From: Lepidodermella squamata
Lineage: Eukaryota > Animalia > Gastrotricha
NCBI GenBank assembly: GCA_047495785.1
Contig: JBLDXI010000019.1
Location: 3,100,001 to 3,164,000 of the forward strand
DNA length: 64,000 nt
Direction: 5' to 3'
This document shows, piece after piece, positions 3,638 to 64,000 of this stretch. The translations under genes and the position numbers were made by a program. The notes beneath the pieces are model-generated. The model was given only the letters and a program-made list of their open reading frames with translations, made no database searches and was not told the DNA's origin. Positions within the stretch are counted from its first letter, which is position 1; the number at the start of each line of letters is the position of its first letter.

Positions 3638-3737
3638 ATGTTCTCCGAATAATAATTTGACTACTCTTTTGCCAATCGATGAGTTTTACGCCGGCGCTAT
3701 TCAGTGAAAGTTAATTTTTGACCATAATTTAGGCATA

Positions 3738-3862
3738 CCGTATTTCTCGAAAATATACCGCACTTCGAAAATATCCCCCCACTCCGATTAACCCCAACCC
3801 TTAAAAATTGTTTGTTCAATCAAACAAAAATATACCCCAGTGTATATTTTCGAAAAATACGG
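3738..3862. mobile_element. MITE, Tc1/mariner (pogo/Tc2-like ends)
   Basis: TA-CCGTATTTCTCGAAAATATAC ... GTATATTTTCGAAAAATACGG-TA: terminal inverted repeats with a TA target duplication. Confidence 0.8.
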
Positions 3863-13099: not shown

Positions 13100-14584
13100 A
13101 TGGCTTTCCTTCTTACCTTTTTTATAACGTTTTTACCTCTCACTGCGTCAAATTCGATCCAACCATGGCCAAAGCCTGATAACCTGGTCGTTTTTTTCCC
13201 AATGACTGGTCAGCAAATGATGAAAGACCTCGGGCCTAAAAATGTTAAGGCTTCGCATTACAACTCATATACCGTCGAGCCCGGTCCATTCGGCGATCCC
13301 AATACCGCTCTTGGTTCCAACAATCCAAATACCCCCATCTTCAATGCTTATGACCCGAGCTTCAAAATGAGTAAAACTTTCACGCTATCTTTTGCTTATC
13401 GCCGTGATACGGGCAGCTCAAAGCAGCGCGGCTTGTTTTCCATCACACGGTCCTCGACGACTCAGACGATTGATATTTCCACTTATTTGGATAAACAAGT
13501 GGCTGCTGCGATAGGCTTCGACAATTACTACTTCGACTCTGTAGTCAACATCGAAGGAGCTTGGAGCTTCGTGACTATCACTCTGAATACACAGACCAAA
13601 AAAATATCCGTTTTTGACCGATTCGGGAAGGGCGAGGTGAAAACAACTAAAGATATTGTCGGGGACCTGAGTAATGTCCAAGGTATCAGAGTCGGCGCCA
13701 GCAGTACCGATGGTCTTCAGGCGAAGGATGGAATGGCTTGCGTTTACTTGTACAACATCGAGCTAAACCCGTTCGAAGTCGCTCAACTCTCCCAGGCCTG
13801 TCGAGCTGTGATTGGATCAGCGCCTTGTGGCTCACCGAGACTCCCCCTAACGCCGCTCCCGACCTTTGTCAGTGGGAACGCGGTTGTCCCGAAACCAGGT
13901 CAATTTCCATGGTTGGCTTCTTTGCGTAAAAATGGCGTTCACGTCTGCTCGGCAGTCATTCTCGACCAAACTCGACTGCTGACCACAAAGGATTGCATGG
14001 ACAGAAAATCACCTCGTTCAGCCTTCGACGTAGTTGTCGGCGAACACGATCTTCAAGTCACGGAGAGCCACAGCAAGATTCACACAATCTCTAAAATAAA
14101 AAGTGGGCCTTCATTCACTGTCCTGCTAGTTAAAGGCGCCATAGATCTGTCCAATCAATACGTCAACGACGCTTGTTGGTTCAGGACAGATCTTGATAAA
14201 GACCCGACAGTAGATGGGTTATACTTCGCCGGCTGGGGCAAAAACGGTCGATATGGACAGACAAGCCAAGGTCTACCGCGATACGTCACGGGGACGTCGA
14301 TGTCTAGCAGCCAGTGTAAACTTGAAGTCCCGGATGTCGACATCTCCAGCGAGATTTGCTTTTCAAATAGCGGCACGGAGCAAGGAGTGCCGTGTGATGG
14401 CGATCAAGGCAGTCCGTTATTGGCGCAAATACCGCTGGAGCGAGGTGTCAGCGAACGCCTTGGAGTCACTGGAATTTTCTCCAAACGTGATGCGAGCTGT
14501 TCGGCTGGCAAGCCTGGTCGCTTTGTTAAGCTGACTGCAGATCAAGTTGATTGGATTGCTGATGCCCTGTCTAAGTTCGTGTAA
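13100..14584 (+). CDS. Lectin-pseudoprotease copy 3 (full length)
   Basis: Intronless 494-aa paralog with a signal peptide, the same TTKDC/GDQGSP substitutions and the conserved TATA box. Confidence 0.88.
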   Translation: MAFLLTFFITFLPLTASNSIQPWPKPDNLVVFFPMTGQQMMKDLGPKNVKASHYNSYTVEPGPFGDPNTALGSNNPNTPIFNAYDPSFKMSKTFTLSFAYRRDTGSSKQRGLFSITRSSTTQTIDISTYLDKQVAAAIGFDNYYFDSVVNIEGAWSFVTITLNTQTKKISVFDRFGKGEVKTTKDIVGDLSNVQGIRVGASSTDGLQAKDGMACVYLYNIELNPFEVAQLSQACRAVIGSAPCGSPRLPLTPLPTFVSGNAVVPKPGQFPWLASLRKNGVHVCSAVILDQTRLLTTKDCMDRKSPRSAFDVVVGEHDLQVTESHSKIHTISKIKSGPSFTVLLVKGAIDLSNQYVNDACWFRTDLDKDPTVDGLYFAGWGKNGRYGQTSQGLPRYVTGTSMSSSQCKLEVPDVDISSEICFSNSGTEQGVPCDGDQGSPLLAQIPLERGVSERLGVTGIFSKRDASCSAGKPGRFVKLTADQVDWIADALSKFV

Positions 14585-38997: not shown

Positions 38998-40582
38998 TTA
39001 TTTTATCAAAATTGAGTTATGCCGTTGTTTTTGAAGTATCGCTGAATTGTGTTCATCTTGATCAATAATTGTTCCTCTCAGAATTGCATTTCGCGACTTT
39101 TTAAGTAGTGCCCTATGCATGTGCCAGGTGTTTCTAGGCGTTGAAAGTAATGCAACCGTCCAAGGCTGCACTTGATCGAATCTTTTAACCCTCCACGGGT
39201 GACTTCCTACACTGAAATTGCAGAAATGCCGATCAGCGATGTTTGCATGGGCTCGAGCGAAGCCGGTAATGATGAAATCATCCAGCTGTAGACCTAATTT
39301 GCCGACGTTCAAGTTCGGAACCGTCAGCCATAATTCGGCCATCGTATCATTGCCCATGACGTAGATTGCTCCATTATAAAAATCTGGCGCTCTAGAAAAT
39401 ATATCCAAAATCAAAATTCAACGATCAGAATTTTGTATTCTGAAACAAACCTCTCGTAGGGGTAATTCTGAGGTGAAATGTACCATTTCGACCATTGATC
39501 ACGATTCGGTTCACCGTACATCCTGTTCCCCGCTAAAAACATTGGCTCCTGCTCATAAGGCCGCAATAGCTCGAGCAATCGATCAAGAAACACAAACGTA
39601 TCGTCATCCATTGAAACGACAAATCTTGCGTGGGAGCAATGAAGCATGGCCCATCGGAACGCTGCCATTGTCTTGAACATCAACTTATCATAAGCATCCA
39701 CAAAATCGTCGATGATAACCATATCATTATAGAAAATCGATTCCGAAATGAATGTCTTGTACTTATCGGGCAAATCATAGCCAAATTTATCTCGACTAGC
39801 GTCAAAATAGCCTTCTGTAAGTCTATCCGCGTAGAATTTCCTCAGATCGTCTTGTGTTTCGGAATGATAGTCGCAGAATAAAGTAGAATTATCGCAAGGT
39901 CTAATTTTCCGCAGTAAATGTTGATAGCCTTCCCTATCACCGCCTATTTTGCCCTCTTTGGTCTGTCCAACAACGAAAACGTGGCGAATCATATCGGAAT
40001 TCGCAGCGTATAAGGGATGCTTCAACCAGGTACTTCGAATCGCGTTTCTTCTCACAAAGTTGTATGGGGCTGATTTGATGAGTAATAGGATTTTCACGCT
40101 GGTATCAGGCGCGTATTTTCCTGATTTATGGCGGCAGGTCAGAGACCGAGGAGTTAGGAAGGAAGGATTTGGATCGGCGACTTGAGTGAAACAGTTTTCG
40201 CATGCAACAGCCTCAGCTAGTTTTTGCTCTGACATTTTGTCAGTCGTCAGGCGTATTGAGTAGTAGCGTTCGTCTGAGTAAGGTTTTCCCGTTCTTCATT
40301 TTGCTTATAAATTTAAAAATTAGTAAATTTTTCAAAGGTTTACCTGTCTTCAATCATTGCAAGAGTCCTACAATCCTGAAAACCGCCGCGAAACATGTTT
40401 GGATTGATGTCATTTTCTCCCCTAAGAACCAAGCTGGGTAACAAGAATACGTTAAACTCAAGCCATAAAACAATAAGAGGCAGTGTGTAGAAAAGAAAAG
40501 AGCCCAATAAAATTGCTTTGCGCGTTCTTGGCCCAGGTAAGAGGCCTCGTGATGAGCGAATGTATATCATGTACGGCTGCAT
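38998..40582 (-). CDS. GT31 beta-1,3-galactosyl/GlcNAc-transferase-like, paralog A
   Basis: Three exons (~40344-40582, ~39452-40293, 38998-~39392). Type II TM, LLIKSAP.NF.RRNAIRSTW, DF.DAY..L.FKT, MDDDTFV, SKWYIS, PDFYNGAIYVM. Confidence 0.9.
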
Positions 40583-42095
40583 AACTGCGAATCATTCCTT
40601 ATGCGATCAACACTTTACAGTTAATGTGAAACCCAGGATTGGCTTAGAGTTCTCCGAATTTTCGCATATTTTAACCGCACTAATCCTATAAGAATGTCAT
40701 TCACAATTGAAAAGCGTATATTCATCTCTCAGCATTCAGCAGGCGGGTGTTATTGAACGGTAGGTGTTTTACACAAGGCGTGTTCTAGGGACCTATCAGA
40801 TTTACTTCAAGTAAAACCCCGAAAACAATGTTTATAAAAATGGAAGAAAAAATAGTTCATTGCACTGAATAGCAATACTCATTAATTCTCAAATTGAAGA
40901 ACATCATGCTATATCCCATATCAATTTGCGGATCCCAAAATGCGAAAAGCCTGCCGCTCTCTGTGGTCTAGCCATATACCTAGAGATGATCGACGTCTGA
41001 AAATAAACTATCGCAATGGCTAACACTCGCCACTCGCTTGTTAAGCAGCAAACGACGCTGCATGGACCGGCCCTCTACTTACAGGCCCGGCCGGTCCTCT
41101 GCTTGAGTGAGGAACAAGCGACTAGTTGTTTAGCTGTTATTTTATCAGATTCATAGCCCGAAACCTAGTATTCCATTTCGTGATGATAGAGCAGGGACCT
41201 AACAGGTGTTTTGAGAGTTCCTCTCAGTTCGGATTTCGAGATCGCAAATCCCGCCTACGCCTTCGGATGCCCGAGCCGAATGATCTGCTATGAGAGCATT
41301 CAGCGCCAACCATAAGAAGTCCGTGCAGCTCAGGTTGAGGGTAACCAATGACGACTCGGATGATTAAATCAAACATTGGCGACTACCGCCAAATTCACAG
41401 ATGGCAAATGCCAATCGGGTACGATTTTTTGAACATACTCAACGGACGTCGAAATGCAAAGTGGGTTAGTGGGCAAGGACAGAAAGTGTTGATCGCCAGC
41501 CTCATCCTTTCCGGTTCTCAGTCATTCTGTGATCCTCCGATTGCAGAAATGATGAGTTGGGCATTTTGAAAACAGGCTTAATTCATCGCTGTAGCCACAT
41601 GGAATTTGCCATGTTGTTTTATAAGTGAACGTCTTACCTAGCGAACTGGAAACAGTCAAAGTAGCCCACGTTGCTCATATTCACAGTAAATTTGATTTAA
41701 GAATGCTCTTTGGAAAGAAGAGGTGGCTTGAAAACGAAAACACTCACAAAATATTTCGCCATAACCAAGAAATTTCCACCAGAGTTACTGTTATAACGTC
41801 TGCGTGTCAATCTTTAAATTAAATTACATTAGCGAGATTTGTGAAAATTGTGATTCATGATTTTTATGTGATTGACAGGAAGATTGTCAGGGAAAAATAG
41901 AATAATTTTGAAAAATGTCAATATCGACGTGTACTTCAATCAATTTTCAAATACGCCAAAATGAAAACTCAGCATAGTAATTAGGTATAACGCGAAAATG
42001 CGGGGAATTATTTCTGAATGTCTGATTATGAAAGCGTGACAAAGCAGTTTACAAAACCCAACCGTTTCCCCCATTGAATATCACTTTTATGTTTT

Positions 42096-42491
42096 ATGGC
42101 TGACAAAACCCATCGCCGATGTGACTTGTTGAAGTCAGTCTTGACGTTCATGCTAAGTATCATTGCTTCAGTTTGCCTCTTCTACTTGATTCTCGCATCT
42201 GTGACTTCATTATTTCAACTTTATTCGAATACCGATAGCAGCCGAAGTAAGCCAGCTAATTATTTCGGTAAGACTGTAGCACATGCAGGTTTTGATGATT
42301 AAACTGTTCGAATATGTTCAGGGGACACTATTCCCACGAGAAATGATTTCCACATGTTTTTACTCACGGCGGCTAAGAGTCGCGAATTCAAGCAGTGGAT
42401 ATCAGTTCGCCGGACTCAACTTTACTGGCATCCAATGACTCGATCATTCCGACGAAAAAGGGGAATCAGCACTATCAGCACACATGGCTAA
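42096..42491 (+). CDS. CxC-TM small protein family, copy 1 (113 aa)
   Basis: Exons 42096-42267 and 42322-42491. N-terminus and exon 2 align with the five neighbouring copies. Confidence 0.75.
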
Positions 42492-42749
42492 TTAAAATTA
42501 TTATTGAATGATGTAATATTGGCGACCTTTGGCATATAAGTCATGATTTAATACATTTTTCATTTTAATATTTCGAACGGGGATCCACACTTGATCAAAG
42601 ACATTTTCTTTGATCCAAAAACCGACTGCGTTTTGAAGTTTGCCCGAAGTTATGAAGTTGCGAAATAAAGTTGGACAGCAGGCTCAAACCAATTCATAGT
42701 TTCATCGCCAGGTGACTGTTTACCTAATTACGTTTATGGGTAATCTCCC

Positions 42750-43155
42750 ACATTCATACTCATACTCATACTTTTTATTCATGCAAGTTGCATTTCGGAA
42801 TTTAGAATTTTGTACCAGACATCATCGCAAGGCTTATGAGTCAACTATTCCCATGGTTGATGGTCGAACCATAGTTCCCAGGCTTTGCGTGCTGATTAGC
42901 CATACCTTGATTGTCGGTGAATGGCGTCCTACACCGGGAGGGAGGAAACCGCGGTCTCGTGTGGATTTGCTTGGCGATGTTACCAGCAGGTACGCACTTG
43001 AGGATTGTGCCCTAGGCTCGTAGTCGGCTTGATTAACGGTCCCAGAAACGCCGCATTCAATGAGTGGAAGAATGATTGGTGATGCGGTTCTGGGAATTGA
43101 ACCAGTGCCTCTTCGCCGCCAGTGAGGTTCTTGGACCGCTCGACCACTGCTCCCC
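42750..43155 (-). mobile_element. tRNA-derived SINE-like element
   Basis: Minus strand GGGGAGCAG-TGGTCGAGCGG (A box) ... GGTTCAATTCC (B box); 3' end AATAAAAA(GTATGA)3. Confidence 0.7.
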
Positions 43156-44294
43156 ACTCGCACAGCTCATAATAGGCTCTAAGACTTAGAGCCATGCTAA
43201 TGATACTGCTTTAGATGGCGACGCTTTTAATTGATCAAGGCCGCTAATTGAACATGGTGACAAGGATTGCTATTCTATGAAGAAGGGCCATGCGCATGAC
43301 AGATAAATTTATGAATGTTTGACAACGTCTGCTATTAGATTGTTGGCTAATAACAGAAAATAGCGCAGATTTTTTCGGGTAAACTTGATGCGAATCCACT
43401 AGACAATAACTATCACACATTAAAACCTCGAATTAGCAGTAGTTCGACAGAAGTCGGACGAGAGAGCAGCTTGCAAACCTGACGAGACCAATGAAGCTAA
43501 AAATGCAGTCGACAAAATCTGCACCTCATCGGTTGTGTTATAATTGGCAAGTAGAGCACGGTTGATCTCTCCCTTCCCTTTCAGCGATAATCGCAAGCAT
43601 ATTGTGAATTGTGAACAATGTAGAATGTTGGGCCCTCCGATCCTCTTCTCGAGTAACCTCCGAGTCCGATCGAACCAGCCGCATTTATTCCGTGCAGTAA
43701 CTTCGGTTATTCATCGCCGGAATTTGATTCGCAACAAAGAGTACGTGCAATTAGTTGGAGACATCATTTAAAAAGTGTCTCTTGTGTTTCTAATGCCAAT
43801 TTAGAAGCCATTCGAGCAGTCGGATAGGTTTGATTCAACTGAATGCTTCATTTAGAGTCTGTCATGCCTGCTGCTACTGTGTGCCTTGTCATGTCATTCT
43901 GATCTTCACCTTGTAATAATATAGTGGCCAATTTTTGAACATCGTTTGCTAGTTTTGCAGTTTTCCACCTTATGATGTAAATAATAAGGACATTTCTAAC
44001 TTGATCATAACCATTTGTCAACAAGCTATTCTCTGGTCGAAAGAACAGGTGGGATATACGATAAACCTGTAAACAAGTTGGACATTATCGACATCTACTT
44101 TAATCTATGTGTAGCATTATTCGTATAATTTACAACGTACTTAGATCAGGAACGTCCCCACGAGCGATACACAACTAAACCGGACTTATTATCTAATTGT
44201 CTGACTCGAGTGAGAATAAAGGCAATTGACAATGTGGCAGAGCTGCTTATAAAACCCATATCGTACCTGGTTTCATATCGGATTTACCAAATTT

Positions 44295-44720
44295 ATGGCT
44301 GATAACGCCCATTGCCGATGCGACTTATTGAAGTCGATCATCAAGTCTATGGTACTGATCATTGTCTCAGTTTGCCTCCTATACCTACTTCTTGCATCCC
44401 TGACGTCATTACTTCAACTATGTGCACAACCCGACAGTTCCTCATCCAGTCAAACCAGCTATTCTCGTAAGAAAGTGCTTTATGAAAATGTTGTTTCCAA
44501 AATTTCTCGAATAGATGAAGTCGACACTCTTCCGATGCTGCGCGATTCTCAACGAATATTACCCCTTCTGACACGAACGGCCAAGGTGCACGAAAGACAG
44601 CAATGGATAATGGATCGTCTGGCTAAACCTGTCAACCAAATGCCTCCCGACTTGACTCACCTATTCGACCTTAGAAGATCAGCATCGATCAGATACCACA
44701 GTTATTTTTCGAAGGAGTAA
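44295..44720 (+). CDS. CxC-TM small protein family, copy 2 (125 aa spliced; 141 aa if the intron is retained)
   Basis: 48-nt stop-free intron 44467-44514 at the same phase-1 position as in copy 1. TATAAAA at ~44248. Confidence 0.8.
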   Translation: MADNAHCRCDLLKSIIKSMVLIIVSVCLLYLLLASLTSLLQLCAQPDSSSSSQTSYSRKKVLYENVVSKISRIDEVDTLPMLRDSQRILPLLTRTAKVHERQQWIMDRLAKPVNQMPPDLTHLFDLRRSASIRYHSYFSKE

Positions 44721-45921
44721 CCTTCTGTAATTAGCGGATAAAAACCCCTATACAGTATCCAGGCTATGCAGTTATCCCTGGGCCTGCAAGCTAGCCTTGA
44801 GGTTGGAATGTGTTTATATGTACCTATGACCTATGATGTATGGTTGCTATAAAGTATAAACACAGAATTCCGCTCACATAGCCCAATCAATGAACTATGT
44901 TACTCTTGAGATTGATATGATGCCAGTTGTTTTTAAGTGTTGAATGAATGATCAGTGATGATCGATCCAGTCTGTCGAACGCCGAGGACTGAGGTGGACT
45001 ACGGACTAAGGCCCGTTTTAATAACAGCACTCCAAGTGGTTCACTGGAAAACGAAATCCTTATGAGCATAAAAAGCGGAGAGTAGTACAGCCTGCATTCT
45101 GCATTCTAGTAACAAAGTCCGCTTCAGCGACGTAGCTGTCTTGCTGTGTACCCCGATCGTTTATGCCCGTTACAAACTGGCCTTGATTGAAGACCTTGGG
45201 TGAAAAGTGATGCTCGACTCGATAAACTGATGCTTACTATTATGGGAACATATTTATGCAAGGGCGCTTTTTAAACATAGAACTATCTACTATCTACAGT
45301 CAGACCTCGCCATTGTAAATTTCATGAGATTCTATCTAGGATCCTGAAGCTGCCAGGGAGTGTATTTTCCAAAATATCGGCAATTGATATCGGCCTGGCC
45401 GAGCTGGAGGAGAAAGAGGGGAGAGGATGATGAGGCTGATACCAACCATTCCACCTGTCAATAAAGCTTTGTATATCTTTTTGAAAATGTAAATCTCTCA
45501 TTGCTGCATTCAGTTTGACCTGTTTTACGCCATTCAAGGGCTTGTTATTTGAATAATTTTATGACACAAATCCTGTCTTATCGTTCGGCGCTGCGGTGCT
45601 GTTCTCCGGCAAAGCTGAATGTGACCAACTTTTTACTCCCGCGATGATTACCTGGCGTTACGTTTAGCAGTTTCCCAACTCATAGGTAAAAATCAGTGCG
45701 TTATTAACCTAAATGATAAAACTATGATTGTAAGTTCGGAATAAAAGAGCGTTTTTCAAAATTGAGTACAGTATTGACATGTGCTTGAAGCAATATGAAG
45801 ACAAGCTAATAAGACAACTCAACGACCCCATATGATCAATTAGGATCACAATTTAACCCGTGGTATAATAAGCCTGATTAAAGACAGCATGGACGTCGTG
45901 AGACAGTAGGGTTCAATATCA

Positions 45922-46312
45922 ATGTCGTTATTTATCGGAGATCACATATGCAACACTCTTTGTGGGTGCGATTTCGTAAAGTTGATCGTAAAATTGATGG
46001 CACTTCTCATTGTTTCAGTGTGCCTTCTGCATTTGCTCATGGTAACATTGGCGTCGTTGCTGCAACTTTATACAGCAGCTGAATCCGACAGTGACTTAGG
46101 TGGCTCAACCGAATATCATCGTGAGAATGACTTATTGCTAATAAAAATGCATTGAAAAAATTGCTTTAATAGGTCAAGGCGAAATATTTCCGACCCTGTA
46201 CGATTTCCAAACATTTTCAAATCTTGTACGGGCAGCTATGATGCACCAAAAACGACGGTGGATAAGAGATCGCCAAGCTAAAACTAGCTGCAATGCATAT
46301 TTCCTGGCTTAA
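45922..46312 (+). CDS. CxC-TM small protein family, copy 3 (112 aa)
   Basis: Exons 45922-46120 and 46173-46312. The homologous ATG reads ATC; an in-frame ATG lies 4 codons upstream. Confidence 0.7.
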
Positions 46313-47113
46313 TGCATCTTTTCAAGCAAGCGCAGTCTTGCTTGAACTTGGTCGGCCATAATAACATAACATATTAGTAATAATAGCTTTTCTAATTTCG
46401 AGCATTTGGCTGTGCGTCTTTAATTAGGCAATCGGCAATCCCTAAGGCAAGCTGAGGATAGAGAGAAAATGTACATTATAACGCACATGTGCCATTGTAA
46501 CACCTGCTGAGTTTGTTTTCTCGCCTCATAGTGCATTGCCTTTTCACTGGTGAATCGTGAATTTTATAGCCCGAGCCTTCCTTCGATGAAAATATTCGAA
46601 ACAGCTAAATAATCGGCTAATAATATTTCTGCGTCATTTGATGAATAAATAGGCCGGAATAAAACATGATGATATCCTTTCTCGATCTGTTCGACCGTTT
46701 TTTATCCCATGTTGTAGATATGTTTTCTCTGTCTAAACGGTTTCTAAAATTCGAAGCATTTCTTTTCCATTCTAAAGCACATGTTCCTGTCTCTAACGTC
46801 ATAGCTGTGTTATGTCTGAGTGACACAATTTAGGCTTAAATTTCGTTGTCATATTTTCATTTTTATGGTAAATGTAAAAAGCAGGAGCTTGCCAGCTGTC
46901 AATCGCATCAATTTTAAGGTGAATTTTTGAAAAAGAGGTGAATAGTGACGTGACCAGTGACATGAGGAAATTGTGAAGATAGCAACGAACAACATCGAGT
47001 CGTCCCTAGATCATGAACCCAGGCAATTATTTCATGTCGCCTTATTTACATGACAGTGTGACGCGAAAATGTATATAAAAGGGCCTGATTTTCCATCGGA
47101 TATTATCTTATTT

Positions 47114-47474
47114 ATGGCTGATAAAGCTACTTGCGGATGCGACTTGGTGAAGTCTGTCGTTAAGTCGATGGCTCTTCTCATTGTTTCAGTTTGCCTACTG
47201 TATTTGATCCTGGCGTTAATAGCGTCATTGCTTCAACTGTTTTTAGCCGCAAAACCAGAAACTGCCTAGGCTCGACCGAATATTTTCGTAAGGATGCGTC
47301 ATAATTAAAATATGCCTTGGTCAAATTGCTTCAATAGGTATAGGCGAAACACATCCGACGTTGCTCGATTTCCAAACATATTCCGATCTAGCGCGGGCAG
47401 CTAAGAATCAACGCTTAAAACGGTGGATACAGGGTCATCGCGTGAACTTGGCTACTATTCCAAGCTCTCCCTAA
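47114..47474 (+). pseudogene. CxC-TM small protein family, copy 4, frameshifted (51-aa TM-only product or pseudogene)
   Basis: TAG at 47267-47269 just before the conserved donor (47288). Exon 2 (47338-47474) is still open and homologous. Confidence 0.7.
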
Positions 47475-49237
47475 TAAATATGCTTACTGCGCATGGGGAA
47501 TGAACATGTAGCCGATGAATCTTCGAATTCAAGGCATTTTGTTCACTTTATGCTGCTTAATCGAATCTTGTTACGGAATGCTTCTTATAAAGGCAAATAA
47601 ATATAACCGAAATCGGACCTCTAGACCATGGTTGGTCCTGAGCAGTGCGCTAAATATGATCTTCGTACAAAAGGGCACTTCCAGGCCTTAGTTTAATGAA
47701 AAAAGCCACCCCCTTCCTGTGATTTTTCCGGCTATCCAATTTGGTCTTTCGAACTGGGGGTACGATAGCCCTTCCCCCGGTACTTCGCACACAGGTCCTG
47801 AGTTTAATGTTTATTCTCCGACGATTTTTCGCCTCCAGATGTCGAGTTGGCGAGTATGGAGAAGAATTTTACAATTGTTGTATAATCTGGCCATGCGGTC
47901 TTGCGATAACAACGTCGTGTACAATGAATCGATTTTCAGTCATTCCAGATAATACCCTACAACAGTACCGAAAACGACCAGAATACGTAGTACAGGGGGA
48001 ATGGAGGGTACTGACATGAAAACTCGAAACACGAAACATCCACGAGCGGGACGCTATACGCCACAGCGTTTCTATAGCGATGCGGCGTGGAATTGAAGCT
48101 GTTTTCTGTTTTTGCGTCTTATTCAACTAGTCAACCATTTTATTGAATTCAAGTCCTTATTTAAGCGATGTAAGCCTGTTTCTAGATGATGTTTAACGAA
48201 AGAACCAAGCAGTTAGGGCAGCTGAAAACAATTAGGTCTAATTCTTTTTGGCATCGGCAAAATCTTAGCAAAATGAGGTTTCATTCTATTATTATCCTAT
48301 GGCCTAGCTAATTGATGAACCGCGAAATCAATGATATACGCCAATTGATTGATAGACTGCAGTGAGACGACAGGAGGCAGGGTGGCAATTTTCGATACAG
48401 AAACGCCAAACGCAATACTTCTCAACTCCTTGGTTCGATAAAAAGACACCTCAATCGAAGGACAAAAAGTACTCTCGATTTTTTAAATTATCTCCGCTTA
48501 GTAAACTACAATGAAAGCCCTACTTCAAAATCAGATGCTAGTTGTGAAAAACTTCGGTAATAAGGGTATTCGAGAATTCGAAGCAGAGGGGCCGTCTTGC
48601 GATCAAAGCCGAAGAAGCGTTGAATTTTCAATTTTCCCATTCGCTCTCATCATGGATCGATGTTTAATTATGCTTTTTCTACCGTGTTCTTGCAGCAAAG
48701 CTATCATCCATTTCATTGGCAATCTATGAGTCAGGGAAATTTGTATGGGATCAAGTAGATTATTGCCTCGGAAAATCATGGCTAGAAATCGATTCATTAA
48801 ACCGGTTGGAATTTACCTTGAGTTCAGGTTTCAAATTCACCAAACAATTTTACTGAGCTTGTTCGTTTTAATTAGATGGGCTAGCATAAGTGTAACTAAT
48901 TTAATAGCGCGCGAACTGATTCACATGGATTGAGTTCATGGCACATTTGACGGAACATTGAATTTTAGGCGATAGTTAATTACGTTATCCTCATTCTGTT
49001 CTGCAATTTCTGACCTAATTCATCAACAAATGGAAAAATGAACATTTCTATCATCTGGAATGTCGTTTGATATATGAACTGCACAATAATTCTGTCAATT
49101 TTATCTCATCACAGCCCCGATCCGAGAGCTAAGTAATTAAAAAGACTGGCTAATTGGTCTGTGACATGAGTGTAGATTCAAAGAGCTCATTTTTGCATGA
49201 ATAAAATCAAATAGCAAATTTTACATTCCTATCATAA

Positions 49238-49753
49238 ATGCTGGTCAATTTTCACTCAACTGCTTTTGTAATAGCCGCACTGCTGCATGTTTGCCAGGCC
49301 GTCGAAGCTGTTGATAACCGAAAACTTCTACGATTTTCAATGGGAATGGCCCCAAGCAACAAACATCTCACCTGGTCAGCCACAGCCAACAAAATCGAAC
49401 TAATGACACAGAAACATTTTCGGGAACTGACAAAACCCGATTTAAGTGAGTTATAGACGATATTACATAACTTTCATTTCTAAATTATAACGTTTAGGGA
49501 ATCCTATCAAAAATTAGGGAATCAGCCCTCTAATAAAATTCGAAGTCAAATGTTAACAATTTCTAATTTTTCAGGGTTGCTGGCGCTGAAAATGATTGAA
49601 ACCAATGACATTGGCGGGTTACAGGAGCTTATGGCCTTCTCACGTGAGGAAAAGCGGAAGCGTAAAGCTGCCGAGTGTTTCGAACGTTTTGGCGGCCAAG
49701 AAGCCCGCAGTGTCCCATTGATTACAGTGCTCTGTGCTTCGTCAACTAATTGA
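49238..49753 (+). CDS. Orphan secreted prepropeptide (128 aa) with a C-terminal two-Cys peptide after KRKRK
   Basis: Exons 49238-49445 and 49575-49753 splice in frame (KPDL-R-LLALK). Signal peptide present; ends EEKRKRK-AAECFERFGGQEARSVPLITVLCASSTN. Confidence 0.72.
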
Positions 49754-50833
49754 AGATTTCCATGACATTGATATATCGAATATCAAAAACCGGTCGAAAA
49801 CCTCTCGTTTACTCTCCTAACTCCGGAATTCGGAGCCCTGAACTTTCAAATTGCCTTTACCGTTTGCATTGTTCAGTTAAACACGACGGTCAAATCTTAG
49901 TTACATAGTTATCCCACGAGAAAAATAGTGTAAATCTCTGGCAGACATTCGAGTTAGAATGCTTTCCTTCCTTGAATTCGCACCCAATTTGTTGTATACA
50001 TCAACTTCATGCGATTAAATTCGAATCATTTTCCTGCCGATCTTATTATTTTGTTTAAAGGTAATTGCTGTCTTGCTGTGTCACGGCTGTTCAATTGCAT
50101 GTTTTCACGAATTCCGTCTGTACGTTGATTTCTTGGACATGGTCCACGTCCGCATTATTTCAACCTCAAACTGTGAATAAGGACATGTTAAACTAATTGG
50201 AATGAACAAGACGAAAAGTTATTCTTGAAAAATATGATAACAATGACGCATACTTGATTCAAACTGGACATCTGCTGAAACGGGACAGCTCGAAGTTCCC
50301 GGATTAAGAAAGGCGACAGACATGTACAAGGGATACGGGATATGATGTCCAATGTAAATCACCCGATTCACAGGGAGATCACGTATGTTCAATCGACTTC
50401 TCCCAATTTGAATTTGCCAATTTGCGGATAGCTCTCACTTTAACTCAGACTTGATTAAAGCTGTCATGAGTCATGAAAGAGATGGAATTTAACGGTGTTT
50501 TAGCTTACCTGCAGCAATTTATCCTTACGTCCATGACGCTCAAACCTGTTGCTTCGCCAATTAAGTATGTTAATGAAATTTCGTCTGTCAAACTTCACGT
50601 CGTCACTTTCGAGTCGAAATTTTAAATAGTCAAATGTAAATAATGACATTGATTGACATCAAATTAATTACGAGGTCAGAAAAGGAGACATTTTGCAATA
50701 TCGTTGAATCAAGTTGAGAAACGTATGACTCAGCGTCTCTAATTCATCAAGGATATTAGTTTGTAATTGTTGTAATTGTGCCACATCATACATTACTGCT
50801 TTTAAAGTCTAACTCTTAACTAGTTTCTCAGTA

Positions 50834-51175
50834 ATGGCTGAAAACGCTTTGTGTGGATGCGACTTGATCAAGGCCATTGTGAAATCGATTTCACTTCTTA
50901 TCGCTTCAGTTTGCCTACTGTACTTAGTCCTGGCTGCTGTTGCATCATTATTAGAAACGCTTACAACAGATGAATCCGAAAGAAATCCGGCCTTGCAAGC
51001 CAGATATTTCCACATTCACGAAACAATGCATGATTTTGAAACTGCCTCCCATCTGGTACGGGAAGCCGAGAATCACCAACTGAGACGAAGGATACGCAAT
51101 CACTGGGCTGAACCTGAACTCGGCTTCAAACCAATTGTTCCTGATTTCATTAGTCTGTTAAAACGAGGAAAATGA
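50834..51175 (+). CDS. CxC-TM small protein family, copy 5 (113 aa, no coding intron)
   Basis: A single ORF covers both the exon-1 and exon-2 homology regions of the other copies. Confidence 0.8.
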   Translation: MAENALCGCDLIKAIVKSISLLIASVCLLYLVLAAVASLLETLTTDESERNPALQARYFHIHETMHDFETASHLVREAENHQLRRRIRNHWAEPELGFKPIVPDFISLLKRGK

Positions 51176-52610
51176 AGCTGAATTCAAAGGTATTCTTTCG
51201 TTGGCGTCGAATCGGCCATTCTAACTTCATCAGCTACGAACTATGGCTTAATTTGAGTAAAACCTCCGTTGGCTCTGTTGACAGATTGTTTAATAAATTG
51301 CTTTACAACTGACAAAGATATATTTTCAACTCATAAGCGACATGATTCATCCGTTCAAAAATAGTGTTCTTTTCAAACTATCCATAATCTTGGTGAATGG
51401 TAAAATTAATCGACCTTTACCGCCAGTTAGGAGCTTGAACCATCCCGGACCTATGAATAAGGAATATGTGTTAACGCACTCATTTTTGTATATTCTCAAC
51501 TTAATTCAAGTTTCTGTTCCATCAATCTGGAATCTGGACTTCCCGACGACGTCTGTCACGAAATGCGAGGCACGTATATTTTGACGCAACTAAGTTAATT
51601 ATACCTCATTACTAAACGGATGACAGCTGGGAGTGCCACTCAAATACAGTAATTTTTTTGTTCCCAACAATCTCTTTAGAGGTTCTAAAATTCCAAACAA
51701 GCAGAAAAAGTCTGCTGCGAGTCCGAGCTCCATGAAACAAAGAGTGTGACGAATTAATTGATTGAATTATTTGCCGTGTTCAAGGAGACGTCGAGGGGAT
51801 CGCCGTTTCGAAATGCTTCAATAAACGAGCTGTCAATAACCGAATGATGTAACAATTCTTAAGGAACTGTCAGCCTCCAATTGACACATTTCTTCATAAT
51901 TCCCATCTATTCTCATCAGGTTTCAAATTATTTTTTAATCATTCTCGAATGCGCGATCTGGCTTTTCGCTCGTAATTAATGAGTATTTCGAAAATAAATA
52001 GATGAAAGCTTAAGTCGGATAAAAACGAGCGGATAGACGGAATCAGCTATTTTTCGCTCTCATTGTGCTATGTTTAGTGATAATTACTATTATTTGCTCT
52101 CATAGCCGAGCGGTACTCAAACTTTTTAGCCAGAGGACCGAAGTTATGATCCGCGATTACACGGCCGCGGGTAACAAGCCGAATAATAGCGTCTAACAAG
52201 CGTATAATCGCTGCCCTTCCTATCGCGAGCCTCCTCAACAGCCAATAATTAGGAAAACTCGCTGAAGAATTTCGCAAAGGACCCAGAAAGCTTGAGTAAT
52301 GCTCTATGTAAAGGTAAACGCTCCTACTTCTGCATAATTTCTGACGACACTTCATTCTTGGATGCACTCTATCATGGCCATCGATGCCAACCAAATGAGC
52401 ATTTAACTAGAAGCCAAAAAATTAACTTGAAAATGAGTGCTCATTTGTCGAACAATTCCTCATCGTTGCGCACAAGTCAAAAATTTAAAATTATGCAAGT
52501 TAGGATACCACCCTCCCCCCTCTTCACGGGGTCCATCTTTCGTGAGAAGCGCAAGCGAGCCAAGCCGAGAAAATTTTAGTTAGAATAGCTGAATTTACTG
52601 GATCAGAGTA

Positions 52611-52756
52611 GGCTTATAATTCTCACTACCTTTGATAACCTGCTTTTTTGAGGACATTGAGGATGAAATTGAGCGAAATTTGAATATAGCGCTCAATCTC
52701 ATCAATCGTTTGCCCTCAAAAAAGCTGGTTATCAAAGGTAGTGAGAATTATAAGCC
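52611..52756. mobile_element. Palindromic MITE
   Basis: GGCTTATAATTCTCACTACCTTTGATAACC.GCTTTTTTGAGG and its reverse complement, with TA on both flanks. Confidence 0.8.
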
Positions 52757-53086
52757 TAATCTCATGCTAAGTTCATGCTAACCGAAAAATTGAAAAACTT
52801 CTAGGGCACTGAACCTACCCGTTGGGGAGACGCTGGTTAGGCGCACGTGCTCATAACTGAGGACAACGTTAAAGCTACAAGTATTGCCTCATCAGGTCGC
52901 AATAGGAAACAGTTGAATGAAATTGATACGACGTAAGGATGTTTACGTGACAACTCACAAAGTCCCTTGATTGTTAACGAGACACTAATTTATACATGGG
53001 TTGTGATTTCAGTTTGCTTATTCATTTGAGCTTGTGACGCTAAAGTTTACAGTAACCATCTGATTTCTCATCAATTAATCACGTTC

Positions 53087-53495
53087 ATGGCTGGCAATAA
53101 TCGTTGTCGATGCGACTTGGCAAAGTCCGTCGTCAAATCGTTGGGACTTCTCATCGTTTCAGTCTGCCTTCTGTACGTGATGTTGGCATTCGTGGCGTCT
53201 TTGATTCAACTATATACAGCAGCGAGTACCAATAATGATACAACAAGCGCAGCAACATATTCTCTTAAAGACGCGTTAAGTAAGGAGACGAACAATTTGC
53301 TAACAGCATCTATTGAATATTAGTGTAGGCGAAACGGTCCCGATTTTGCATGGCCCTCGATCGTTTTCCAACCTGGTTAAGGGAGTTGGCAGGCATCAAT
53401 TAAATCAATGGATACGAGATCGCCCGGATAAATTTCGCTTCAATTCAATGTTTCCTGACTTCAGCAATCTATCTAAACAAGAAACGTTGACATGA
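53087..53495 (+). CDS. CxC-TM small protein family, copy 6 (~119 aa)
   Basis: ORFs 53087-53323 and 53313-53495 are joined in frame by a predicted intron at 53280-53328. Confidence 0.7.
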
Positions 53496-55026: not shown

Positions 55027-56555
55027 CTAGTGTATTGCAAAAACGTTATCAAGTGGATCCAAGTCGTTTGGTCCTGAAGTAAGAATAGCTTGATTAACAT
55101 GTTTTGTATTGACAGCGTTCGACAGGAATGCAACGACCCAGGGTGCAATCTGATGCAAGCGATATCTACGCCAACGATGCGAACCGACTGAAAGCTGGCA
55201 AAGGTGCGTGTCCTTAATACCAGCCAGAGCTCGAGCGAATCCAGTTAGGATGAAATCATCGAGTTGAGTCCCCAAGGCGGTGACTTTAATGTTTGGCATT
55301 GTCTTGATAAGAGCGTCAACTGAATCACGACCCATGACGTAGATTGCTCCGTTGTAAAAATCCGGAGTTCTGTAACAAATTAATTCGTATTAATACTGAG
55401 TGAAAAATGCCATTCGTACTTCGTGAAAAAATATGCTATGTAGTAAGAAAATAAAAAAATATCATGGGGTTCGACATCACGAGGTCTCTAAAGATTCGAA
55501 AGATCGGAGAAGGTAGGAAAATAGATTGGTTGTAAATCAGGTATTTACTTGTTTGGGGCAAAAACTTCTGGTGAAATGTACCACTTGGAGCCAACATCGC
55601 GATTCGGTTCGCCATACATGCGATTCCCTCCCAGAAACATCTTCTCGTTCTTGTATCGCTCCAACAAAGCTAATAACCGATCAGGAAATACGAAAGTATC
55701 ATCGTCCAGTGAAACCACGAATCTCGCCTTGGAACAAAATTTCCGCGTCCATTGTAAAGCTGACATGCTTTTGTGAGTCAGATTAGCGTAGCAATCAATA
55801 AAATTGTCGCCGATTATCACATCGTTATAGGTCATCGCTTCGCCTATTTGAAGTTCGAAAGTCTCGATAGGATCGCGAATGACCTTAGTTTCAACGTCCG
55901 AAATGGACTTCCAAAATCGATCAAATTTTCGGCGGTAATTATCGATTTTCTTCTCGAGATCGGCATCTTGCCCGCAGAAAATTTCCTGACATTTTTCTTT
56001 GATCTCATTTGTGAACGCCATCGATTTTTCGTCGAAATGAACCTCTCGACTTAGGCCTGAGAAGAATCCGTACCGGAACCGATGCGGCTGACTGGCGATT
56101 TTACGGTTGACTAGCCACGAATTTCGGAGAGCTTGGCGGCGCTGAAAGTTACCAGGCGCTGATTTTATCATGAAAAACACGTCGAAATCTTCGTTTTCGT
56201 CACAAGTATTCGGCCATTCGAATAAGTACTCTGGCGGTTTGACTTCGAAGCAGTTATTGCAACTTGCCGCTAGAGCGATTTGTTTCTCAGATCCAGAGAA
56301 GCCTTCGCGCATTTTTCGGTAAATTTCGTCCTGATAATCGATGTTGTAATGGCGTTTCATAATGTCGATTGTTCCGCAGTCGATGAAACCACCCTGGAAC
56401 ATGAGGTCGTTGTAGTCAGATTGCGGCTCGATCATGTTAGGCTCGATCTCACTTTGGCCAACCATGGAAGTAAGGTAGAGTAGCGATATTGGTGCGGCAA
56501 TCAATGAAACAAAGTAATGGAAAATAAATTTCGAGAATATTCGCCGCCTCATCTC
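55027..56555 (-). CDS. GT31 beta-1,3-glycosyltransferase-like, paralog B
   Basis: Exons ~55549-56555 and 55027-55369. MIKSAPGNFQRRQALRNSW, LDDDTFV, PDFYNGAIYVM, QLDDFILTG. Confidence 0.9.
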
Positions 56556-57214
56556 AGCATCTTCTATCAATTGTGAAAAAACCACGCTTTAAATTCCAAT
56601 AAAAACGATAATTTTGGTTTAATGAAACTTGACGCTGAATGCTGAAGGCTGAACTCATTATTTTGGGGAAAATAAAGCAATAAATCTAGGTTTTTCAAGT
56701 TTAAGTACTATGTTCTACTAGATTTCGACGTAGAAATGTGCGACGTTGATAATTTTAAATGGCTAGCATAGAATCTGTGCTATGATGTGAAACGCTCACA
56801 ATATGGATTGGCTCGGCCATTTGAATTCTCGCCGCTTTTGCGCGGTAGAGTTGAGAGTGAGCCGCTAAAGGAAAAATTATCCTCATGGCATTTCATCGCC
56901 TCTATCGAAGGCTGCTTCTAAATTGACATTAACCAGGGCAATTAAAAACATTCAAAATTGCGACAAGACAGCAGCGTCAATAGGGCAAGCTTTATTTTTG
57001 GCTGTAAATGAAGAAATGTTAAAACGGTTAACCAGGGTTTAGCAATTTACACCATAAATGCAGAGTTTGTGGCTCCAGAAAAGGATTTTTTCGAGTTTAT
57101 TTTTATTCAATCTTCTCGGCGTTACTGAAGTTACTGAAAAATTATTTTATTTCCGAAGTTTCAAGATACTAATTCACAAATAATTCTCTAGCAAAACACA
57201 TTAACAGCTATAAC

Positions 57215-59346
57215 TCAATAAAACGTAAATCCGAACAACGTGTTTCGATTCCGATTTCGAAGATAAGTCCGCTGAACATGGTACGTATTCCTCGGATTCG
57301 ACAAAAAAGCAACCGTATGCGGCTCGATTTGATACGCCCGCTTCGTCGCCCACGGCTGGCAACCAATCGAAAAATTACACAAATGAGTATCCTTAACTCC
57401 ACCTAACGCCCTAGCAAACCCCGTGAAGATAAAATCATCCAATTGAGTCCCTAATAACGTTATATCAATATTTGATAACGACTTCAAAATCACGGGGACA
57501 GTGTCGTTGCCCATGACGTAGATAGCTCCGTTCATAAAATCCGGCACGTGGTCGTAGGGGTATCTCGTCCTGGGTATGTACCACTTCGAAAACGGGTTCC
57601 GATCAGGCTCGCCATACATTCGATTCCCTCCCAGGAATAACGGGGTGTTTTCGTAGTCTTTAACTAGTCTAAGCAGCCGATCGACAAAAACAAAGGTGTC
57701 ATCGTCCATGAGTGCGACGAAGCGTGACGATGAGCAGTAGCGCGTGACCCACTGCAGGGCGGACGTTGATTTGTAGGTCAAATTGCCGTACGCATCTTGG
57801 AAGTTGTTGACGATGAGTAGGTCGTCGAATGACAACGCCTCGGCCATCAGCATTTCGTAGGTGAACGGCTGGTTTGTGTCCTGGTCGTGGGTGGATCGCT
57901 CGAATAACGCCCGCCGAAGTTCGAACACTTCGTGCGCGTCCATAGGGTTCCTGCAATGCTAAAATGGCAGATTTAATATTCGGAGTTAATAAAAAACTAA
58001 ATAATGAATCTATGACCAATGCCTTATATGGATTGAAAACTATAAAAGCTCATTTTATAACCAGATTCAGCCTAACAAAAATTTGTAGAATCTTTCGCTT
58101 TTCGGAGGCTTTGATCATAGGCGAGAAACAGCGAAATAGTCTAAAATGACATGCCCCATTAAAATAGCCGGAAAATTCTTAGAAAAGTTAAAGTTTCAAA
58201 TTTCGAAAAAATAGAAATCAGGAATGTGGGATTAAAAATTTGATAAATACCAGAAATATCACACTTGTTACCATTTTTTCGTATTTTTCCGGTAAATTTT
58301 ATGAAATCTAAAACCTAAAAATTTAGCAGGATTTTCTTCATGGGACAGGCTGAAGGTTCGAGTCCCAAAAATATTCATCCTTAACTTTGAAAATGTGAAG
58401 GGAGTTGCCGGAAACTTCGATTTATCGATTTTTACGATTGGGTGTTGGAATAATTCTGGTCTACATCAATCAATCAATGTTACAAAATGTTCATGATTTT
58501 TCTCTGAATTTAAAATTATCTGTATCTCATGGCAATTTTGGCAAGACATTGGTGTGCATGATTTTTGGTTTAAACACTCATAGCCGAAATTTGGTTTTGC
58601 ATAGGTAGTTCATTATATTTTTGAATTTTATGAATTTTTTGTAACTTTGCAAACAATTATAATTTTCAATAAAAATCACTCACATGTGTCGTGCATTTGT
58701 TCAGAAGCCGGTGATAATGCGCCTTTTTCTCCTTCGCCAAGTCAGTTTTCATCTCGCCCAACACGAATAAATACCTAACCTGCGTAACCAAGGACGCTAT
58801 CCACCTGCTTGCCAGCCACACCTGTCGAATAGCCTGGCGCCGTTCATAATTACCCGGCGCACTTTTGATAAGCAGCAACAGGGTGACTCCACGGCCGGCA
58901 CCCGGCTCACACGTGTCCGCCCTCGGGTCGAGAAAGGTCGGCTCGAAGCCAATTTTATTACACCGGTAACACTTGACTGGCTCGACTAGGTCACGCTCAT
59001 TGATTTCGGCTGTCACGCGCCTGGTTTCGTAATAAATTTGATCGCTATAAGTAACGCTGTGTTTGTTCTCGATAATTCGAATCGTTTTACAATCGACGAA
59101 ACCGCCGCGGAAAACTGGTCCGATGATTTCGTCCTGCATAGGGATGATATTTGGCAGGAGGAGTTTTTCGATGAAAAACCACCCGAGTGTAACTGTCGCT
59201 GAGGTGAATAAGGTTAAGCCGAGGACACTCGCTATAGCAAGTTTACGACTTCTACGCCGGTTCAAGTGCATTGTTTGAGCGTAATAGGAATGTTGGTTAT
59301 TATGAGAAAATGAATAACCGTAATGCGGCAATTGAGGATGAATCAT
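57215..59346 (-). CDS. GT31 beta-1,3-glycosyltransferase-like, paralog C
   Basis: Exons 58684-59346 (start may be 59271) and 57215-57958 join as KCTTH-HCRNPMD. The same GT31 motifs are present. Confidence 0.9.
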
Positions 59347-63953: not shown

Positions 63954-64000
63954 GGTTTGCTAACATAAATTATGGTTTATTTCTCTTATTGGAATTGCTT

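Follow-up and report, generated by a model that had tools for sequence, protein, structure and literature searches.

A tandem family of small, putative type II membrane proteins beside B3GALT5-like genes in the gastrotrich Lepidodermella squamata

Described systems with a comparable layout

LAT, PAG and NTAL are small, single-pass, palmitoylated transmembrane adaptors whose helix adjoins juxtamembrane cysteines, and the vertebrate GT31 enzyme T-synthase has a helper protein, Cosmc. As described in PMC12992958 and its references 8 and 40, pro-surfactant protein C (proSP-C) is a type II precursor with a short cytosolic N-terminal part and palmitoylated juxtamembrane cysteines that lie N-terminal to the helix. 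Juxtamembrane basic residues set the type II topology, according to the same sources, and the helix acts as an anchor; beyond it come a linker without structure and a C-terminal part in the lumen (PMC12992958). Drosophila GABPI is described as the pilot of beta4GalNAcTB (PMC2615082).

The family analyzed here is encoded in a stretch of 64,000 nucleotides of the Lepidodermella squamata genome (hereafter, the window). Its architecture consists of a short tail and a hydrophobic helix, followed by a linker rich in Ser/Thr and a C-terminal part that is helical and contains W-I-x-D-R, in products of about 115 residues (112-125 aa across open copies) with one predicted membrane helix. The likeness to proSP-C is one of layout: a short N-terminal part, Cys before the helix (palmitoylation being putative here), basic residues, a linker and a C-terminal part. 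Unlike proSP-C, the family lacks a BRICHOS domain (Pfam search of the second and fifth copies, c2 and c5), has a C-terminal part that is helical and only 65-85 residues long, occurs in an invertebrate, and resembles no solved chain in sequence by profile search. Membership among the BRICHOS-type precursors (proSP-C, Bri2) was rejected: their luminal domain of ~100 residues with a Cys pair is absent, the C-terminal part holds 0-1 Cys, and the c5 model is all-helical.

The cytoplasmic tail-transmembrane-stem (CTS) region of type II Golgi glycosyltransferases also joins a tail that is short and basic to one signal-anchor helix and a stem rich in Ser/Thr. However, no catalytic domain follows the stem in the family, no homology to the CTS exons of the neighboring GT31 genes (paralogs A, B and C) was found, and the copies conserve the helix to a much higher degree than a generic anchor would call for. 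GABPI and Cosmc are alike in concept only, each being a membrane protein in its own right on which a single glycosyltransferase depends for its targeting or activity. The former is a multi-pass DHHC-related protein and the latter a GT31-like type II protein of ~318 residues, whereas the family products have 113-125 residues and resemble neither. With LAT, PAG and NTAL the family shares small single-pass proteins and a juxtamembrane Cys; in those adaptors, however, the CxxC comes after the helix because their N-terminus is extracellular, and they have a long cytosolic tail with several Tyr motifs where the family has a short part after the helix. Assignment to the LAT/PAG-type adaptors was rejected, given that the family Cys precede the helix and one invariant Tyr follows it. 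The conserved mono- or dibasic sites that flank a conserved mature peptide in cleaved secretory precursors are lacking in the family, where RRKR (c1), RR (c2) and KR (c5) occupy non-equivalent positions.

The array and its gene models

A family HMM run against the six-frame translation of the window matched six plus-strand copies starting at 42096, 44295, 45922, 47114, 50834 and 53087 (c1 to c6), confirming the six same-strand genes reported by an earlier, sequence-only reading. Exon 1 is matched with E-values of 1e-25 to 1e-47 and exon 2 with 2e-13 to 9e-18, and no other locus in the window is matched (next best E = 0.23). The HMM and the alignment also agree with that reading on a shared N-terminal motif and a second, downstream motif. 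The C-x-C that it placed in the tail holds for the family consensus (MA-x4-C-x-C-D-L-x-K-S) but not for c1, whose tail has a single Cys (R-R-C). Pairwise protein identity between copies is 30-50% overall, reaching 59% for tail plus helix and falling to 35% for the C-terminal helix motif and to 15-24% for the linker and extreme tail. The helix alone (23-27 residues, core I-[AV]-S-V-C-L-L-Y-L) is strongly conserved, with 62% identity and an invariant S-V-C-L. Spacer and flanking DNA gave no alignment between copies in pairwise comparison and repeat search, the latter recovering as repeats only the exon-1 blocks and exon 2 of the 45922/47114 pair.

The same reading had recognized no domain; Pfam, protein, PDB and structure searches bore it out. 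Specifically, c2 and c5 have no Pfam match at E <= 0.1, a word-indexed search of 5.8 billion clustered proteins found no relative, and a profile search of 1.84 billion representatives returned 0 matches at E <= 0.001. A PDB profile search matched no solved chain, and neither the Foldseek and Atlas searches nor a metagenome DNA search found a relative.

Four copies are intact (c1, c2, c5, c6) and two are decaying (c3, c4). Copy c1 (exons 42096-42267 and 42322-42491, 113 aa) has a 54-nt phase-1 GT-AG intron at 42268-42321 and carries RRKR near its C-terminus. In c2 (exons 44295-44466 and 44515-44720) a 48-nt GT-AG intron, GTAAG...AATAG, occupies the family position (44467-44514); because it is in frame and free of stops, the ORF also reads through it, the product being 125 aa if spliced and 141 aa with the intron retained. 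The last copy, c6 (exons 53087-53279 and 53329-53495, 119 aa), has a 49-nt phase-1 intron at 53280-53328. Copy c3 (exons 45922-46120 and 46173-46312, 52-nt intron 46121-46172) is open, with 112 aa, but degenerate: MA is lost at the start, an upstream ATG being used instead, and otherwise conserved positions are substituted (CDF, KL, LH). Copy c4 (exons 47114-47287 and 47338-47477, 50-nt intron 47288-47337) is broken, its exon-1 frame ending after 51 codons at a TAG (47267-47269), past which a frameshift places the homologous codons (LGSTEYF) in another frame. Both c3 and c4 have a common premature TAA, 11 codons ahead of the ancestral stop, that removes the P-D-F tail. With two of six copies damaged, the family may therefore be decaying.

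The intronless c5 (50834-51175, 113 aa) keeps the C-terminal V-P-D-F-x-x-L-L-K-R tail and has lost the family intron precisely, as would be expected from recombination with spliced cDNA. The intron of about 50 nt that the sequence-only reading gave to most copies is real, but its count is five of six, c2 included, with c5 alone lacking it; these five are GT-AG introns in phase 1, 48-54 nt long and all at the same position, and every one keeps its splice sites. The host is a small-intron invertebrate. No spliced joint was found in the public runs with the locus, which are DNA runs or contigs of unknown kind, and neither the exact c2 read-through product nor the c5 product has a record in public assemblies. 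Upstream of the genes, no 9-mer is common to all six copies beyond shuffle expectation, so that a TATA-like block visible in the upstream alignment is not statistically established.

Predicted topology and selection

About 17 residues (13-24 across copies) precede the helix, with 2-4 Lys/Arg on its N side, a neutral or acidic stretch on its C side, and the tail Cys 8-10 residues ahead of it. The hydrophobic span is uninterrupted for 23-27 residues (mean Kyte-Doolittle 2.6-3.0) and exceeds the length usual in a cleaved signal peptide, whose h-region measures about 7-15 residues and which has a small-residue site at -3/-1. Judged by these features, the layout is that of a type II signal-anchor protein, in which the N-terminal ~17 residues are likely cytosolic and the C-terminal 65-85 luminal or extracellular. 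The C-terminal part has 0-1 Cys and a net charge that ranges from -1 to +9 among copies. An AlphaFold2 model of c5 (mean pLDDT 80) has helices at residues 9-50, 52-92 and 105-111, the first being one long helix with pLDDT 96-98. The layout put forward previously is retained: the basic tail is short and bears Cys, the hydrophobic helix is long, and the stem, rich in Ser/Thr, leads to a short C-terminal part of helical character. The claim of selection on the array is supported at least for the N-terminal tail and helix, as detailed below.

In the tail and helix, differences between copies at codon positions 1/2/3 are 0.31/0.16/0.48, a threefold lower variability at the second position than at the third; the pN/pS of this region is 0.40 (bootstrap 0.29-0.53). 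The ratio rises to 0.61 (0.51-0.74) in the C-terminal helix motif and to 0.84, near neutral, in the linker, and the C-terminal part shows weak codon periodicity (0.43/0.47/0.53). Synonymous sites are saturated between copies (pS 0.56-0.62), and despite this saturation five of the six retain open frames of 112-125 codons. A second c1 haplotype, present in the source DNA run, stays in frame, with indels of 2 and 1 nt that together restore it, and differs by 11 nonsynonymous and 2 synonymous changes, all from 42249 on, which fits little or no constraint on the C-terminal half. The tail and helix thus carry a clear coding signature, while the C-terminal part evolves fast.

On balance, and with modest conviction, we take the array to be a real, taxonomically restricted orphan family of type II, one-helix small membrane proteins that grew by tandem duplication. 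Since they are conserved, the tail and helix would be its functional core: a cytosolic tail, M-A-x4-C-x-C-D-L-x-K-S-[VI]-[VI]-K-S, and a helix, I-[AV]-S-V-C-L-L-Y-L ... A-S-L-L-Q-L. By sequence rules, the juxtamembrane Cys are probably S-acylated, and the tail and helix may engage a partner at or within the membrane, in which case the proteins would serve as small subunits with an accessory or sorting role. Divergence between copies and alleles is fast in the Ser/Thr-rich stalk and in the putative helical ectodomain (P-x-L-x-D-F ... W-I-x-D-R, then P-D-F-x-x-L).

Competing explanations and the flanking GT31 genes

Three GT31 genes, all B3GALT5-like and all on the minus strand, flank the array, and score 69-88 bits against Galactosyl_T (PF01762) in a Pfam search. 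Paralog A (38998..40543) has its own N-terminal anchor exon (~40343-40543) and stands in divergent orientation to c1, at a distance of 1.55 kb. Paralog B (55066..56585) has its own membrane anchor within its ORF and points with its 3' end towards the end of the array; paralog C (57215..59346) likewise has an anchor within its ORF, and the closest solved structure to its catalytic part is human B3GALT5 (8zwp_A, E = 9.5e-21). We rejected the small genes as members of the GT31/Galactosyl_T family, c2 and c5 having no Pfam match to it at E <= 0.1, and as missing GT31 anchor exons, the GT31 genes lying on the minus strand with their own anchors, where the family HMM has no match.

A serious but unlikely alternative is that the genes encode membrane-tethered or secreted peptide precursors, in which the conserved N-terminal 45 residues would be an unusually long signal or pro-region, and signal peptidase, a sheddase or a dibasic convertase would free the fast-evolving C-terminal helix to act extracellularly. 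Toxin and antimicrobial-peptide families pair a conserved pre-region with a hypervariable mature part, and this array likewise joins a conserved N-terminus to a fast-evolving C-terminus, with c1 allelic differences that are almost all nonsynonymous; small residues follow the helix in c3, c4 and c6 (T-A-A, L-A-A), and dibasic sites occur in c1 (RRKR), c2 (RR) and c5 (KR-G-K). These sites, however, are at non-equivalent positions, neither aligned nor conserved, and c6 has none. Moreover, the long hydrophobic span with its ~17-residue n-region is a closer fit to a signal anchor than to a cleaved signal, the conservation of the helix goes beyond mere hydrophobicity, and the C-terminal part has no Cys framework. 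Its variable charge and the unconserved dibasic sites weaken the earlier suggestion of short basic amphipathic peptides. It is improbable, to a clearly greater degree, that the array is non-functional, consisting either of decaying pseudogenes or of a repeated segment of DNA in which ORFs were kept by chance or by recent duplication. The broken c4, the degenerate c3, the lack of a spliced joint in the runs with the locus and the nearly neutral C-terminal half between c1 alleles point that way, but the copies are old by their saturated synonymous sites and yet five frames are open, the second codon position is constrained in the N-terminal part, the upper bootstrap bound of its pN/pS is 0.53, and splice sites are retained in all five intron-bearing copies.

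The bracketing of the array by GT31 paralogs A and B/C, noted by the sequence-only reading, is correct, but the functional link that it drew from this is unsupported beyond adjacency. We consider it improbable, if marginally less so than a non-functional array, that the small proteins are palmitoylated type II partners that pilot, retain or regulate these beta-1,3-galactosyltransferases in the Golgi. Their position between the enzymes, the divergent arrangement of c1 and paralog A, a tail-helix-stem layout like that of a Golgi-enzyme targeting region, and the precedent of glycosyltransferase-specific membrane helpers (GABPI, PMC2615082; and Cosmc) would be in keeping with it. Because the strands are opposite, the enzymes have their own anchors and the family HMM detects no relation between those anchors and the small proteins, adjacency is what connects the two, and the GT31 genes are most likely neighbors only. 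Since the GT31 genes also form a tandem family at this locus, a region prone to duplication may simply house both expanding families. The more specific proposal, that a new class of S-acylated type II microproteins is dedicated to piloting or regulating the neighboring and equally divergent enzymes in the Golgi, with a fast-evolving luminal helix that would tune the enzyme or substrate engaged, is a shade less probable again; were the Golgi-pilot reading true, the array would provide a lineage-specific route to surface-glycan diversity. Least probable by far are alternative variable first exons with their own promoters, spliced to constant downstream exons as in the protocadherin or UGT1A clusters: the units are in tandem on one strand, each with its own upstream region, but an in-frame stop closes every unit after its own second exon, no conserved donor precedes that stop, and the next genes downstream are the minus-strand GT31 genes, with no constant exons on the plus strand.

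With two copies decaying and a link to glycosylation that is only positional, the value of the orphan family is limited for now. Annotation routinely overlooks such small proteins, which often prove to be regulators of larger membrane machines. If expressed, the array would constitute a sequence family without a detectable relative among ~1.8 billion representative proteins, and the best-conserved part of that family is the membrane helix together with its short Cys-bearing tail.

The c1–c6 array and its gene models

The window is eukaryotic DNA with a G+C content of about 40% and short introns. All six plus-strand open reading frames of the array, c1 to c6, are present where a sequence-only reading had placed them, and the 11.4-kb array is real and was correctly described. 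In a six-frame translation of the 64-kb window, both a motif scan and an HMM of the six proteins match these loci only, the HMM with E-values of 1e-25 to 1e-47 for exon 1 and 2e-13 to 9e-18 for exon 2; the next best HMM match (E = 0.23) lies antisense to c5. Repeat detection in the array recovers only the exon-1 blocks, plus exon 2 for the c3/c4 pair. As the same reading had said of the spacers, the DNA between and flanking the copies is unalignable, matching no better than shuffled sequence.

Five of the six paralogues keep a common exon–intron structure: c1 (42096–42267 and 42322–42491, intron 54 nt, 113 aa), c2 (44295–44466 and 44515–44720, intron 48 nt, 125 aa spliced or 141 aa by read-through), c3 (45922–46120 and 46173–46312, intron 52 nt, 112 aa), c4 (47114–47287 and 47338–47477, intron 50 nt, product broken), and c6 (53087–53279 and 53329–53495, intron 49 nt, 119 aa). 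All five introns are GT-AG and phase 1, begin with GTAAG or GTGAG, and fall at one alignment position, directly 3' of an invariant Tyr. Earlier taken to be intronless, c2 in fact has its 48-nt GT-AG intron at the family position; because that intron is stop-free and its length divisible by three, the reading frame also runs through it. The remaining gene, c5 (50834–51175, 113 aa), lacks the family intron by a precise loss, which we infer reflects recombination with spliced cDNA. Such recombination would be indirect evidence for germ-line transcription and splicing of the family.

Four genes are intact (c1, c2, c5, and c6), one is doubtful (c3), and one is broken (c4). The c4 frame meets a TAG at 47267–47269 after 51 codons, and the homologous codons beyond it (L-G-S-T-E-Y-F) lie in a different frame. 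In c3 the M-A start is gone, the opening ATG stands at the position of the 5' leader in other copies, and conserved positions carry substitutions. With C-terminal codons numbered from the Trp of W-I-x-D-R, both c3 and c4 have TAA at codon 18, and c3 stops again at codon 29, the very position of the c6 stop. Together, the common TAA and this second stop indicate that the c3/c4 ancestor lost its last 11 codons, which carry a P-D-F-x-x-L tail kept in c1, c2, c5, and c6.

When aligned, the 200 nt upstream of each gene share a block of partial conservation that in four to five copies includes a TATA-like element about 40–50 nt before the ATG. No 9-mer occurs in all six of these regions in excess of the shuffle expectation, so we claim no regulatory motif for the six copies. 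The locus is present as DNA in two sequencing runs of the same species, X2 (the source DNA, heterozygous) and X1 (low coverage, with inverted chimeric joints); a third, X3, is unrelated. No spliced joints occur in contigs from X1, X2, and X3, none of which is an RNA run. The queries of the run searches were 5.6 and 2.9 kb, lengths that hide small RNAs, and no RNA run was among the matches.

Two repeats lie between the genes. The stretch at 42748–43121, between c1 and c2, is a high-copy dispersed repeat. In the source DNA run its k-mer depth is about 2,700–4,700, where unique sequence has about 90, and there are loose ends and many variant contigs; a short transposable element, SINE-like or other, is the probable identity. 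At 52602–52765, between c5 and c6, a near-perfect inverted repeat with 55-nt arms, 93% complementary, around a 54-nt loop is a MITE-like or hairpin locus.

Protein anatomy and selection

The proteins open with a tail of the form M-A-[DEG]-x3-C-x-C-D-L-x-K-S-[VI]-[VI]-K-S (c1 has R-R-C in place of C-x-C), followed by a single uninterrupted hydrophobic span of 23–27 residues whose core, I-[AV]-S-V-C-L-L-Y-L, and later A-S-L-L-Q-L vary little or not at all among copies. Beyond this helix come a linker of about 15–22 residues, roughly 20–60% Ser/Thr, and, after the intron, a helical part with [GS]-[ED]-T-x-P-x-L-x-D-F ... L-x-[RK]-A-A ... W-I-x-D-R; intact copies end with a P-D-F-x-x-L-x-K motif. 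The post-helix part has 0–1 Cys and almost no N-glycosylation sites. An AlphaFold2 model of c5, with the paralogues as alignment, has helices at 9–50, 52–92, and 105–111, with a mean pLDDT of 80 and values of 96–98 across the membrane span. The Lys/Arg-rich flank of a membrane helix generally faces the cytosol (the positive-inside rule). There are 2–4 Lys/Arg on the N side of the span, and the 15 residues C-terminal to it are neutral or acidic, which favors an N-in, C-out, type II orientation. So oriented, the tail cysteines, 8–10 residues N-terminal to the span, would lie in the cytosol next to the membrane, where S-acylation usually occurs, and they may well be S-acylated.

Overall pairwise protein identity among copies is 30–50%, and it is unevenly distributed. 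The tail and helix have a mean amino acid identity of 59%, codon-position differences of 0.31/0.16/0.48, and a pooled pN/pS of 0.40 (bootstrap 95% 0.29–0.53), and purifying selection clearly acts on the N-terminal half as coding sequence. The linker (24% identity, 0.52/0.44/0.53) is near neutral, with a pooled pN/pS of 0.84 (0.66–1.14), and the C-terminal helix motif (35% identity) is weakly constrained at 0.61 (0.51–0.74). The extreme tail has a mean identity of 15%, and codon-position differences over the entire region beyond the linker are 0.43/0.47/0.53. Synonymous sites are near saturation (pS 0.56–0.62), so that corrected ratios are lower but imprecise. The proposal that the protein motifs are under selection is borne out for the tail and helix and more weakly for the C-terminal motif. 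Conservation extends over the whole membrane helix, with no conserved helical face (conservation moment p = 0.7).

The source DNA run shows patchy heterozygosity. Its haplotypes are identical over 42000–42248, the promoter and c1 tail and helix, and from 42249 on the second c1 haplotype has 13 coding differences, 11 nonsynonymous and two synonymous, with indels of 2 and 1 nt that jointly restore the frame. This 11:2 ratio is that expected under neutrality or diversifying selection; purifying selection on the c1 ectodomain is not evident from it. Across 42000–47600, difference-free stretches of 1–1.4 kb at 43732–45149 (c2) and 45367–46389 (c3) alternate with blocks of about 5–6% divergence and indels (42249–42556, 46516–46622, and 47050–47131), perhaps the product of gene conversion or of old haplotypes within the array.

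Relatives, GT31 neighbors, and possible function

The first reading had recognized no domain, and database searches bear this out. Pfam returned nothing for c2 and c5 but one sub-threshold membrane-helix match, and a word-indexed search with c2 found no match among 5.8 billion clustered proteins. An exhaustive search with the family profile matched none of 1.84 billion representative proteins at E ≤ 0.001, and no PDB entry at E ≤ 1. Foldseek likewise had 0 matches in the PDB; the top score in a language-model Atlas was 0.83, below the usable level, and a shape search there gave generic helices only (TM ≤ 0.52). The exact products of c2 (read-through form), c5, and the neighboring protease are not on record. 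The protein collections apparently did not include the proteins of this genome, and these negatives do not bear on the family's spread within it or in close relatives. In metagenome DNA, a scan with c4 exon-1 peptide patterns returned 599 matches, 0 of them confirmed. A degenerate DNA pattern built on I-[AV]-S-V-C-L-L-Y-L selected one contig (L002), rejected as a relative because it has that core only, without the C-x-C-D-L tail or second motif; we take it as chance, as a few chance matches are expected of a pattern of about 36 bits. By sequence the family is new, of a generic architectural kind.

Three minus-strand genes with Pfam Galactosyl_T domains bracket the array: GT31 A (38998–40543) on one side, and GT31 B (55066–56585) and C (57215–59346) on the other. 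The bracketing described earlier is real; the functional link drawn from it is a matter of adjacency, on the opposite strand. Each GT31 gene has its own N-terminal membrane anchor, and the family HMM finds no match on the anchor exons, so the small genes are neither GT31 exons nor derived from GT31 anchors. On anatomical grounds we reject both the model in which they are GT31 exons and the alternative-first-exon model. It is possible that the small proteins are partners of the GT31 enzymes, a reading that has adjacency and nothing else behind it; c1 and GT31 A, divergent and 1.55 kb apart, give the sole positional hint of shared regulation. Cosmc is a precedent for a glycosyltransferase-specific helper. 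Another is GABPI (PMC2615082). Both are proteins unrelated to the small family. The suggested resemblance to the targeting region of Golgi type II glycosyltransferases holds in outline and not in sequence.

In the best-supported interpretation, the proteins form a lineage-restricted family, small and of type II membrane orientation. Their function would reside in two conserved elements, the cytosolic tail and the membrane helix; the ectodomain evolves fast. The proteins are probably S-acylated accessory or sorting subunits that would meet a partner within the bilayer, partner binding being suggested by sequence features. The chief alternative is a peptide precursor, membrane-tethered or secreted, whose pre-region is conserved. 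Closest in layout among known proteins is pro-surfactant protein C, with its cytosolic N-terminus, palmitoylated juxtamembrane Cys, type II anchor helix, linker, and luminal part (PMC12992958). Its defining BRICHOS domain is absent from the small family, which limits the likeness to a possible working of the N-terminal half and does not extend to membership.

Other genes of the window

Between anchor and catalytic domain, the GT31 paralogues have in common an unusual conserved region, F-[RQ]-G-G-F-[VI]-D-C ... C-x-x-C-F. The nearest solved structure to the catalytic part of GT31 C is human B3GALT5, and a word-indexed protein search with GT31 B found no relative at E ≤ 1e-10, which marks these as very divergent B3GALT-like enzymes. 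A tRNA and Rfam search of the 64-kb window gave no match. At 2123–14584 lie four single-exon paralogues of a secreted LamG-like and trypsin-domain protein. A single relative came up (31% identity, 746 aa, Laminin_G_3 + Trypsin), within a comparable tandem cluster of trypsin genes on an ENA metagenome contig (L001); that contig carries no member of the c1–c6 family. Amid the protease paralogues, an exon at 10375–11088 on the minus strand was named by eye as part of an SLC13-like transporter (sodium-coupled, for di/tricarboxylates or sulfate). A 327-aa open reading frame at 28079–29062, with no Pfam match, encodes an N-terminal membrane helix and then a long low-complexity Ser/Asn/His-rich tail. 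On the plus strand, 61100–63968 holds exons of an aminergic-type GPCR whose N-terminus and third loop are long and rich in Ser and Asn.
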